Below, piece after piece: positions 633 to 4,870 of a stretch of 64,000 nucleotides of DNA (positions are counted from its first letter, which is position 1; each line of letters begins with the position of its first letter). Source of the stretch: Blastocladiella emersonii ATCC 22665. Its lineage: Eukaryota; Fungi; Blastocladiomycota. Below the pieces are notes generated by a model. The model did no database searches. It was given only the letters and a program-made list of their open reading frames with translations, and was not told the DNA's origin. Both the position numbers and the translations under genes were made by a program. The stretch lies in assembly GCA_025594325.1 (NCBI GenBank), contig JANHCV010000005.1, positions 2,145,774 through 2,209,773 on the forward strand, in the 5' to 3' direction.

Positions 633-1432
633 ACGTAGCGCGCATGCGGGCGGGCAAGGTAGGAACGTTGCTCACGCAATGGATCATGTATTTTATGGAA
701 CGTAGTCTGCACAGCAGAGAGGGGGATGTCCGGCCCAATCGGACCCTCCACGAATCACACCGCGCCGCCGCCTCTGTTGCCGCCGCGGCCGCCGCTAAAC
801 GACCAATCGAATCTTCTACTACACCACCAACACCACCACCACCACCCGCTACGCTTTCTCCTGTCCATGGCGAGGACCTCAGCACTCCCGGCTACGCCAT
901 GGTCGGCGAGTCCGTTGCTGGCGCGACGCGGTCCCTTGCCTCGTTCGGCCGTCGCCTCCTCGCCTCCATCTGGCGCGACCCCGCCGCTCTGTCTCGCCTC
1001 GCCGGCTGCGTTGTACGCGCCCGCGACGTCGCCTTCGCCTCCCGCTCACTCCAACTCGACCGCGACCTCGCTCGACCCGTCCTCGCGGCCATCACGTCCG
1101 TCGCCTCCCGATCCCTCTGGCGCGGCGCCTGGCTCTCTCACTCCGCTGGCTGCGCCGAGGCCGACCCACTCGATTCTTCTGAAGCTCCGCCGCGCGAGCC
1201 GCGTGAGCGGGCCCGCCGCCCATTTGGCCAGCCCATTGCCACACTCAAGTTCATCAACCGCCACCACTACTGCTCTCGCTGTCTGAGCTCGCTCCATTCC
1301 CACGTCCCCAACCCGTCTGGGCGTGAAGAAGACCCGCCAGTGTGCCCGCCGTCCACCGCGGCCCAAGCGGCTCTTGTTGCAGATCCCTCCGTCCGACTTT
1401 GGCTGCTCGGTTCCCCAAGGCACATTCGGTAA
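617..1432 (+). CDS. 271-codon chimeric ORF: ~48 flank-derived codons fused in frame to the coding remnant of the retro-insertion; product unknown, possibly the C-terminus of a non-LTR retroelement protein
   Basis: 31 of 40 codons at 953-1072 end in C, i.e. real coding bias in this frame. In-frame ATGs at 644, 686, 695 (flank) and 899 (insert). Open in all 16 units (617, 4728, 8879, 13030, 17205, 21355, 25466, 29617, 33768, 37879, 42061, 46171, 50281, 54391, 58501, 62611). Stop is TAA in unit 1 and TGA in the others. Expression unproven. Confidence 0.5.
   Translation: MGGWADVARMRAGKVGTLLTQWIMYFMERSLHSREGDVRPNRTLHESHRAAASVAAAAAAKRPIESSTTPPTPPPPPATLSPVHGEDLSTPGYAMVGESVAGATRSLASFGRRLLASIWRDPAALSRLAGCVVRARDVAFASRSLQLDRDLARPVLAAITSVASRSLWRGAWLSHSAGCAEADPLDSSEAPPREPRERARRPFGQPIATLKFINRHHYCSRCLSSLHSHVPNPSGREEDPPVCPPSTAAQAALVADPSVRLWLLGSPRHIR
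743..759 (+). repeat. 5' copy of 17-bp target-site duplication ACCCTCCACGAATCACA
   Basis: Exact match to 2011-2027; flanks diverge on both sides (CGG|..|CCG versus GAA|..|ATA). Confidence 0.9.
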
Positions 1433-1482
1433 TGTGACTAGACCAAGGATCGGCGCAGTCGACGCAAGTCCAGTAGCACCAG

Positions 1483-1983
1483 GTGTTTGCGCGCGGTACT
1501 GACCCATCCACTTTCTCTCGTTCTGACGACGATGAAACGCATGATCCGCCACTGAATGGCGCTGACGCACAAAAGAAAACGAAGGAGAAAAACAAAAAGA
1601 AAAGAAACGCAAAAAGAAGAATGTCCGCACAAAAAGATGGAAAAACATCTGACGAACCTCACAGGCCATGCCCAAGACCACAGCACTGCCACTGGTCCAT
1701 TGGCATGTCCTCGCGCTCTAGTTGGTCACGCCAGCTTGTCTCTCTGCTCGGTCTCTCTTTACTGCGTTTCGTTCGCTCTCTTAGCTCGCTGCTCGAGCTC
1801 GCTCTCTCTTCGCCTCGTTCGCCCATCTCTCTCGTACTCCCCTCTCCTCCCACAATTCTTCCCCCTATGCTCCTCGACGTGCACGGTCCGGGCTTGTCGT
1901 ACTGCGGCTTGCCCACAAAAGGGCTGCTGCCCGTTGCACAGTGGATATTCTGCTTGCAGTTCACAACCGCTGTTAAGGAATAA
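1483..1983 (+). CDS. Possible 166-codon ORF in the 3' part of the insertion (acidic + Lys/Arg-rich, then Ser/Leu-rich); may simply be 3' UTR
   Basis: GTG start; TAA lies inside the AATAAA signal; low-complexity purine then pyrimidine blocks keep several frames open, so support is weak. Confidence 0.2.
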   Translation: MFARGTDPSTFSRSDDDETHDPPLNGADAQKKTKEKNKKKRNAKRRMSAQKDGKTSDEPHRPCPRPQHCHWSIGMSSRSSWSRQLVSLLGLSLLRFVRSLSSLLELALSSPRSPISLVLPSPPTILPPMLLDVHGPGLSYCGLPTKGLLPVAQWIFCLQFTTAVKE

Positions 1984-1984
1984 A
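1979..1984 (+). promoter_or_regulatory. AATAAA polyadenylation signal of the retro-insertion
   Basis: The hexamer ends 12 nt upstream of the A-tail at 1997, a canonical spacing; present in all 16 units. Confidence 0.7.
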
Positions 1985-2010
1985 TGCATTGGTTCCAAAA
2001 AAAAAAAGAA

Positions 2011-2027
2011 ACCCTCCACGAATCACA
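2011..2027 (+). repeat. 3' copy of 17-bp target-site duplication
   Basis: Immediately follows the A-tail; exact match to 743-759. Confidence 0.9.
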
Positions 2028-2066
2028 ATATGCGCGCAATGAATTGACCGATGATATGGCCGTACC

Positions 2067-3124
2067 AAACCAGCCACGTAGACAATTGTCATGGTAGTCG
2101 AACAAAACCATATTCAAATCTTGGACTACCCGCTTGTCCAGCTAGCCAGGGACCCATAAATCACAGTATCGACCCAACTAAATATTTGACAGCAGAAAAA
2201 TAGTAAACCAACCTCGTACAAAATTGTCATGGTACTCAAACAAAACCATATTCAAAACCTTGACTTCCCGCATATCCAGCTGGCCAGGGACCCATAAATC
2301 ACAGTATGGAACCAACAAAGTATCTGACAACAGAAATATGGTAAAACAGCTACGCGGATAATTGTCATGGTACTCAATCAAAACCATACTCAAACCTTTG
2401 CTTTCCTGCATGTCCAGCTGGCCACTGACCCATAAATCACAGTATCGGACCAAGAAAATATCTGACCATGGAAATATAGTATACCAGCCACCTAGGTAAT
2501 TGTCATGGCACTCAAACAAAACCATAGTCAAGTCTTTGACTATCCACATGTCCAGCTGATTGAGGACCCATGAATCGTAACGTCAAAGCAACAATATATC
2601 TCACCATGGAAGTATAGTAAACCAGCCACTCTGGCAATTGTCATGGTACTCAAACAAAACCATACTCAAATCTATGACTTCCCACATGTCCAGCAGGTTG
2701 GACACCCATAAATCACAGTATCAAACCAACAAAATATCAGACCACAGGAGTATATAAAACCGACCACGTAGGTAATTGTCTTGGTACTCAAACAAAACCA
2801 TATTCAAATCTTTCAATTCCCGCTTGTCCAGCTAGCCAGGGACCCATAAATCACAGGATCACAGCAACAAAGTATCTGACAACAGAAATATGGTACACCA
2901 GCCACGTAGATAATTGTCATGGTACTCAAACAAAACCATACTCAAATCTTCGAGTGCCCCATGTCCAGGTGGGCAAGGGCCTATAAATCACAGTATTGAA
3001 CCAAGAAAATACCTGACGATCGGGATGTATCAAACCCGCCACGCTGATACTTGTCGTGGTACTCAAACATAACCATACTCAGCCAAATCTTTGAATACCC
3101 TCACGTCCAGGTGGGCAAGGAACC
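2067..3124. repeat. Array of ~8 diverged 138-bp AT-richer monomers (higher-order repeat inside each unit)
   Basis: The anchor AATTGTC(A/T)TGG recurs at 2084, 2222, 2360, 2498, 2636, 2774, 2912 (138-bp steps) and as ACTTGTCGTGG at 3049. Monomers 1 and 2 differ at about 25 of 138 positions. Same array in units 1-15. Confidence 0.97.
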
Positions 3125-3238
3125 AAAGCGCCAGATATTCAAATCTACCGCTTTGTGCACACTCCACTAGCCAACTCTTCGATCCACTAATTATGGAGCC
3201 CGTCGTCAAAGTACACTGTCCAATCAACTAAGTAAACA

Positions 3239-3313
3239 GCCAACCTGCCAGCCTGCCAGCCTGCCAGCCTGCCAGCCTGCCAACCTGCCAACCTGCCAAC
3301 CTGCCGCCTTGCC
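3239..3313 (+). repeat. 8-bp VNTR GCCAACCT-(GCCAGCCT)n-(GCCAACCT)3-GCCGCCTT; n=4 in unit 1
   Basis: Parsed directly. n for units 1-15 = 4, 9, 9, 12, 9, 4, 9, 9, 4, 13, 4, 4, 4, 4, 4, matching unit-length increments of +40, +64 and +72 bp. Confidence 0.96.
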
Positions 3314-4870
3314 TACCTGCTATCCGAACACCCACACCGCCTCGCAAGTCATTGGGGGCCCGCGCTCTCTGGTTGCCGTCCCAGCCAACAAAGGAATGAA
3401 TGATGAGCCCTGGCAGCCTGGCAGCCTGCCACACTGACAGCCTGACTGACAGCGCCCACCCAGTAGATATTATCTATCTCGTAGGTAGTCTGGGAGGACT
3501 TCGTTAGTCAATACACGACCAGTCTCCTCCTGGCTGCCGGCTCTGCTGTCCACTCCAAGTCCTGCATGATGATGGGCCAAGGAGGGTTCCGAGCAGCTCC
3601 TCTGTCTACCCGCGTGAAACCACTCACCCGCTGACGGATGTATACCACGCACCGTGCAGCGCGCACAGCACACAGCGCCCGACGCACCACGCGGTGCGCA
3701 CACGGCGCAAACGGCCACCCTGGTGTCACACACACTCGCATGAACGGCAGGCATGCAAGGCGTCCGTCCTCAACTCAACAATGATTTATCATCCAGGCTT
3801 ACTACTCGCTCCAACGGGTGCGCCTGCCTGCCCTCCCAGTGCCGTTGATTGATTGATGGGTGCGCCAGCCCCTGTTGCCAGCCACGTGGCAAGCAACACC
3901 TCAGCACCTGCGTCGCCCTGGCCACCGTCCGTACCTTGCAAACAGCGTAGCAGCCGTACTGCTTCACAGGGCTGCAGAGGGCTGGCTGCGGAGGGCTGAG
4001 GCGGCAGGGCTCCTCCTGCAGGAAGGAGACAGTGCTGGGGCCAAGGAGTGCTAGGGACGACAAACTGAATGGTGAATGACCAGACCAACACACCACATGC
4101 TCCTGGCAGGAGTGCGTGTGGGCGTGCGGGCCCGTGTCCGTGCGTGCCTGTGTCTGTGCGTGCCTGGATTAGACCTCCATCACAAGCGCCAAGTGACCAA
4201 GTGACCAAGTGACAAAGTGACCAAGGTGACCAAGGTGACCAAGGTGACCAAGGTGACCAGGGTGACCAAGGTGACCAAGTGACACACAAGCACCAAGCTA
4301 GGGTGGCCGGGCGGCCATGGACCGTACTGCATGGGTACCATTACCGTGGACTGGCCGCGGCCATTTATTGCAGCACAGCCCTGCCTGGCTCAGGACGCGG
4401 CGGGCGTGGGAGGCGGGCAGGGTAGATAGGTAGCAGCAGCAGGACCTGGCTAGCTGGCTGTCAAACAACACGAGTGAAGGGGTGCGTGAGGGAGGGTGTG
4501 TTGAACGAATGGATGGGTGGATGCAGGCAGACCTTCATACGTGTCGTGCGTGATGAGGATTGGTTGGCCACCATCCACCAACGCCATGGCATGGCTGCGG
4601 GTGTCGCTGCGTGCGCCTTGGCGGGTGGTGGTGTTGGTGGGTGGTGTTGGTGGGTGCTGTGGTGGTAGTGGAGCTAAAGTGGTGTTGTGGGGCTCCTGGG
4701 GTCCCCTTCCCTTCCTGTCTGGCCTAGGTGGGTGGGTGGGCGGACGTAGCGCGCATGCGGGCGGGCAAGGTAGGAACGTTGCTCACGCAATGGATCATGT
4801 ATTTTATGGAACGTAGTCTGCACAGCAGAGAGGGGGATGTCCGGCCCAATCGGACCCTCCACGAATCACA

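Follow-up and report, generated by a model that had tools for sequence, protein, structure and literature searches.

Processed retrocopies are recognised by a poly(A) tail, an upstream AAUAAA, a target-site duplication (TSD) of 7–20 bp and an mRNA-like layout (PMC7692494, PMC3747384). Trans-mobilisation of polyadenylated RNAs is known mainly for the relaxed elements of the L1 clade, in flowering plants and in mammals (PMC3747384). For fungi, studies of gene retroposition are scarce (PMC5470649). The insert that we describe here resembles L1-type processed retrocopies in its tail, its AAUAAA, its TSD and its mRNA-like layout, but differs from them in that its target is not a T-rich L1 site, in that its host is an early-diverging fungus, and in that a copy of it is found in every unit of a tandem array.

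For this last property, the D4Z4 macrosatellite at human 4q35 provides a point of comparison, as it carries the DUX4 retrogene (PMC12376486, PMC3836709). Both loci are kilobase-scale head-to-tail arrays in which each unit holds the same retro-derived, CpG-rich, ORF-bearing segment; however, DUX4 has clear homologues and a proven function, whereas the ORF here is homologue-free and putative, and it is here that TSD and tail are still intact. Streeck reportedly described, in 1981, the bovine satellite 1.711b as satellite 1.711a plus an inserted sequence of ~1.2 kb, which would likewise make it an older unit with one inserted mobile sequence fixed in all units; there, the empty satellite (1.711a) coexists with the filled one, whereas no empty form occurs in the DNA analysed here. 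The fixation of an inserted sequence throughout a satellite is a phenomenon long known, and satellites built from transposable elements are also known (PMC5932611).

The array and the junctions of the insert

The window, by which we mean the whole stretch of 64,000 nucleotides analysed from Blastocladiella emersonii ATCC 22665, lies inside a macrosatellite array that continues past both window ends and is at least 64 kb long. Its features are as follows, with all but the first given at their positions in the first complete unit:

1–64000, forward strand: macrosatellite array, head-to-tail, with ~15.6 units of 4110–4182 bp that are ~99.9% identical
743–759, forward strand: 5' TSD copy, 17 bp (or 16 bp), in a junction context that is the same in 16/16 units
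760–2010, forward strand: insert of 1251 bp (one bp shorter in 7 units), very probably the retro-copy of a polyadenylated RNA
760–898, forward strand: leader, 5'UTR-like, 139 nt, containing a tract similar to (CCA)n and, at 867, an upstream ATG in weak context
899–1432, forward strand: putative ORF of 177 codons, with a start in strong context (GCCATGG); its stop codon is TAA in unit 1, TGA in the others
1433–1996, forward strand: region resembling a 3'UTR, lower in GC (~0.5) and comprising a purine block rich in A (~1560–1650), then a CT-rich block, and AATAAA at 1979–1984
1997–2010, forward strand: remnant of the poly(A) tail, reading A11GAA (8 units) or A10GAA (7 units)
2011–2027, forward strand: 3' TSD copy, directly after the poly(A) remnant
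2028–4853, no strand assigned: remainder of the unit, 2826 bp, old and CpG-depleted, with internal sub-repeats

With the 17-mer ACCCTCCACGAATCACA as a landmark we found 16 unit starts, spaced 4110–4182 bp apart, and an alignment of the 15 complete units contains 7 variable sites (single-base or 1-bp) and one VNTR. The latter, a GCCAGCCT repeat at ~3239–3320 and equivalent positions, ranges from 9 to 18 copies between units, and its copy number accounts for every unit-length class (4110–4182 bp); a second repeat, CCAAGGTGA at 4189–4283 (and equivalently at 78–172), is invariant between units. A 138-bp sub-repeat is present in 7.4 copies at 2067–3081, and these copies are only ~78% alike where the units are 99.9% alike; it is an old internal repeat, frozen within a recently amplified macro-unit. 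Among the variable sites, a G/A polymorphism at 2034 and equivalent positions turns CpG into CpA in 6 of the 15 units, and units 11–15 all combine the A10 tail, A at 2034 and a short VNTR. Variants that are common to neighbouring units, as in this block, form the pattern expected from local unequal exchange. No rRNA or tRNA was found, with 0 Rfam matches across the window (E ≤ 1) and 0 genes called by ARAGORN, and Pfam searches on 11 ORFs or frames returned no domain and nothing below E = 0.3.

The 17-mer has 31 perfect matches in the 64-kb window, against 0.01 expected, and these are strictly paired, with two per unit at a distance of 1268 or 1267 bp. At the 5' junction, the 77-nt context (30 nt on each side of the 17-mer) is identical in all 16 units, and the 3' junction is found in each of the 15 units that reach it, the 16th falling just beyond the window end. 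The order at the 3' junction is AATAAA, 12 nt, A11GAA or A10GAA, and then the second 17-mer, which abuts the tail directly; since the base preceding this 3' copy is an A, the TSD may be 16 or 17 bp long. The AATAAA at 1979–1984, 12 nt before the tail, is the only forward-strand copy in the 4111-bp unit, which also holds a single A-run of 8 or more (1997–2007). The unit being circular, it offers two arcs between the 17-mers, and because only 760–2010 ends in a tail, on either strand, this arc is the natural choice of insert.

An earlier sequence-only reading of this DNA had drawn attention to the two 17-mer copies, the second immediately behind AATAAA-N12-A11GAA, and to a 5' junction that is the same in all 16 units; both are indeed present, A11GAA being the tail of 8 units and A10GAA that of the other 7. 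The string which it predicted for the empty site agrees with the true flanks. It had also named, as one finding that would count against it, a 17-mer belonging to a longer internal duplication, and here the similarity ends exactly at the 17-mer: a repeat finder gave a shared sequence of exactly 17 nt between the junctions and no longer similarity, and local alignment of the insert with the remainder of the unit, on both strands, returned nothing but a brief (ACC)n/(GGT)n match of low complexity, hardly better than in shuffles. A near-perfect inverted match of ~20–26 nt between the left flank (510–529, (GGT)n-like) and the insert leader (824–849, (ACC)n-like), which reaches a score of 41 where 40 shuffles gave at most 38, was set aside as low complexity that does not extend. 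The empty junction itself does not occur in the 64-kb window, even with 3 mismatches allowed, and two 27-mers, one of TSD plus 3' flank and one of the insert, are absent from metagenome and prokaryote contigs, where this fungus is not expected.

The target-primed reverse transcription of non-LTR elements characteristically leaves a TSD of such a size (here 16–17 bp) and, at the 3' junction, a tail, and a length of 17 bp fits non-LTR retroposition, the TSDs of LTR elements and DNA transposons being much shorter. In our insert, the TSD is direct and within the range of ~7–20 bp that target-primed reverse transcription produces, the tail abuts its 3' copy, and the polyadenylation signal lies within the 10–30 nt upstream of the tail that characterise processed retrocopies. 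The tail is short, with 14 nt, and is interrupted by a G. The nick on the primed (bottom) strand, as read from the sequence, would be GGGT/CC, with the second nick 17 nt away; it offers at most one T able to pair with the tail and departs from the T-rich TTTT/AA of L1. Such a nick suggests an enzyme without an L1-like target preference, although one event cannot show site specificity.

These departures, that is, a target that is not T-rich and a tail of only 14 nt with an internal G, together with changes in CpG content that lie ~100 bp off the junctions, are what could be expected if no retroposition had taken place, and either a chance 17-bp repeat lay beside a chance A-run or the segment arose by duplication or insertion at the DNA level. 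We regard this as highly improbable: none of 300 block-wise dinucleotide shuffles of the unit held a dispersed exact repeat of 17 bp or more (maximum 16), the single A-run and the single forward-strand AATAAA of the unit sit exactly at the repeat, extended homology is lacking, and neither DNA transposons nor LTR elements leave TSDs nearly as long.

All units share identical junctions, which speaks for one event rather than many, and the insert is very probably a passive scar, left by a single retroposition and later spread together with the repeat. The RNA that was copied would have been a polyadenylated transcript of RNA polymerase II type, ~1.24 kb long and composed of a leader, a GC-rich mRNA-like body, a 3' region lower in GC, AAUAAA and a tail. 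The machinery of a non-LTR retrotransposon would have copied it, through target-primed reverse transcription, into a ~2.84-kb sequence that had a staggered break; fill-in of this break would have created the 17-bp duplication. Unequal exchange or conversion would then have multiplied or homogenised the filled unit, giving the present array of at least 64 kb with units ~99.9% identical. We infer mechanism, single event and spread with the repeat from the anatomy of the junctions, their identity between units and the composition of the insert. The scar would provide a clean, datable marker within a macrosatellite, tracing all of the array (at least 64 kb) to one founder unit in which the insertion was already present. 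Descent from one founder would imply that these repeats turn over quickly when compared with point mutation and CpG decay.

Composition and the order of events

The insert (760–2010) has a GC content of 61% and a C-rich strand, with observed/expected ratios of 1.18 for CpG, 1.15 for TpG and 0.94 for CpA, whereas in the rest of the unit these ratios are 0.61, 1.57 and 1.34. TpA is without excess in the rest of the unit, so that the signature is not RIP-like, and the decay of CpG to TpG and CpA there points to a history of cytosine methylation rather than RIP. Given its CpG ratio of 1.18 against 0.61, and the excess of TpG and CpA outside it, the insert appears to have missed the long CpG decay of its surroundings, and on these compositional grounds we infer that it is a younger arrival, from an unmethylated and probably genic source, in an older, CpG-decayed sequence. 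Near position 700 the GC skew flips, being +0.43 before and -0.32 after. For CpG, the best change points are 630 and 2100, each ~100 bp outside a junction, so that the compositional boundary is not sharp at the available resolution. Around the target, ~200 bp (630–742 and 2028–2100) have a normal CpG density, with GCGCGC motifs on both sides, and the insertion seems to have fallen within a small part of the old unit that has kept its CpGs. Another patch of this kind is seen at about 3500–3800.

Together with one 17-mer, the 2826-bp remainder makes up an 'empty' unit of 2843 bp, and an array of such units that existed before the insertion is one of two possible orders of events. In the other, the retro-copy was inserted into single-copy DNA, and only afterwards was the 4.1-kb segment around it amplified, without there ever having been an ancestral array of 2843-bp units. 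A unit identity of ~99.9% fits such a very recent amplification, no empty unit or junction occurs within 64 kb, and no feature of the window calls for an array before the insertion; against this order, the rest of the unit carries old sub-repeats and strong CpG decay, which the insert lacks. Sub-repeats and decay indicate that the flanks are older than the insert, not that they already formed an array. We consider amplification after insertion a serious possibility, though we would not put it first.

The probable source of the insert

Within the insert, a GC change point lies at 1372, with a support interval of 1220–1432, and a reading frame is open from its first base region (761) to 1432. 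The first ~140 nt have a codon-position GC pattern opposite to that of the 177-codon ORF, which mildly favours a leader over a truncated reading frame. We conclude, from the arrangement of these parts, that the source was probably a polyadenylated, Pol II-type transcript with an mRNA-like layout. Whether this transcript came from a cellular gene or from the mobile element itself is a finer distinction, in which we lean slightly towards a cellular transcript (an orphan or lineage-specific mRNA, or an lncRNA) over the 3' end of a LINE.

It is in this respect that we depart from the sequence-only reading: its poly(A)-primed, TSD-flanked retro-insertion in a single event fits every test made within the window, but the 5'-truncated non-LTR element that it took as the source is unsupported, as neither Pfam nor a phmmer search of 1.84 billion proteins found similarity to a reverse transcriptase, an RNase H or the C-terminal part of an ORF2. 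If the insert were nonetheless the 3' end of a 5'-truncated LINE, 761–1432 would represent the C-terminus of ORF2 and the rest its 3'UTR. A frame that is open from the start of the insert to 1432 is consistent with this, and LINEs of several clades terminate in AATAAA and poly(A); however, Pfam gave no RT, RNase H or other domain, phmmer and word-indexed search gave 0 matches, the first 140 nt run opposite to the ORF in codon-position GC, chance alone often leaves frames as long as this one open in the unit, and a putative 'zinc knuckle' (CSRC...H.H) matched no known motif in any search. Taken together, this makes a LINE source rather unlikely. Three further candidates were rejected: 1) a SINE, as the insert has no tRNA, 7SL or 5S head (Rfam 0, ARAGORN 0) and is, with 1.25 kb, too long, 2) the 3'-terminal stem-loop of a 'stringent' LINE, for which a fold z of -1.9 is not convincing, and 3) a chimeric insert derived from two RNAs, with an internal tail at 1560–1650, as this block has degenerated much further than the tail of the same age at the end of the insert.

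The array might also be a gene array, in which the retro-copy is a functional retrogene, encoding the 177-aa product or a chimeric frame of 271 codons from 617, that was amplified for a useful product, in the manner of DUX4 in D4Z4. The ATG at 899 lies in the strong context GCCATGG, the ORF has GC3 > GC1 > GC2 (p about 0.02), GC drops near its stop codon, and it is intact in all units. Intactness, however, is uninformative when units are 99.9% identical; an ORF of this length appears in 18% of shuffles and is thus within chance, with overlapping ORFs of 139–271 codons in other frames and on the opposite strand; and codon-position GC was dismissed as a coding test because it is not discriminating, the bias being stronger in an ORF outside the insert that is due to chance. 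Nor does the predicted product resemble known proteins: the 177-aa sequence had no match in a word-indexed protein search and 0 matches by phmmer against 1.84 billion representative proteins, the ESM atlas yielded nothing above noise, its protein-language-model recognition score is low, and its single-sequence AlphaFold (AF2) model has a low-confidence pLDDT of 42. Protein homology searches likewise gave no match for a 211-aa antisense ORF in the insert and a 166-aa ORF in the rest of the unit, and seven ATG ORFs of the unit are absent from a collection of 15 billion proteins. We consider an array amplified for a retrogene product improbable.

If the source was a cellular mRNA, the insert would be among the few documented retrocopies with poly(A) and TSD in fungi, and would imply a blastoclad LINE that is able to act in trans; a retrocopy of a cellular RNA in a blastoclad would be, if confirmed, a modest novelty. 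A more specific scenario, in which a cellular transcript was trans-mobilised by a blastoclad non-LTR element with 'relaxed', L1-like poly(A) recognition and a cut that is not T-rich, and in which the host array is a centromere-candidate repeat, is speculative, and we hold its parts unlikely to be true all at once. Were it true, a centromere-candidate repeat would have gained an mRNA-derived, CpG-rich and possibly transcribed module in every unit, and, if the array is centromeric, the insert would offer a handle on whether transcription or CpG-rich modules matter there.

Two differences between units fall within the insert. At the stop codon of the 177-codon ORF (1431 and equivalent positions), unit 1 has TAA where the remaining 14 units have TGA, and unit 2 alone carries two C-to-G changes, one at 1415, which would replace Pro by Ala in the frame of the ORF, and one at 1930.
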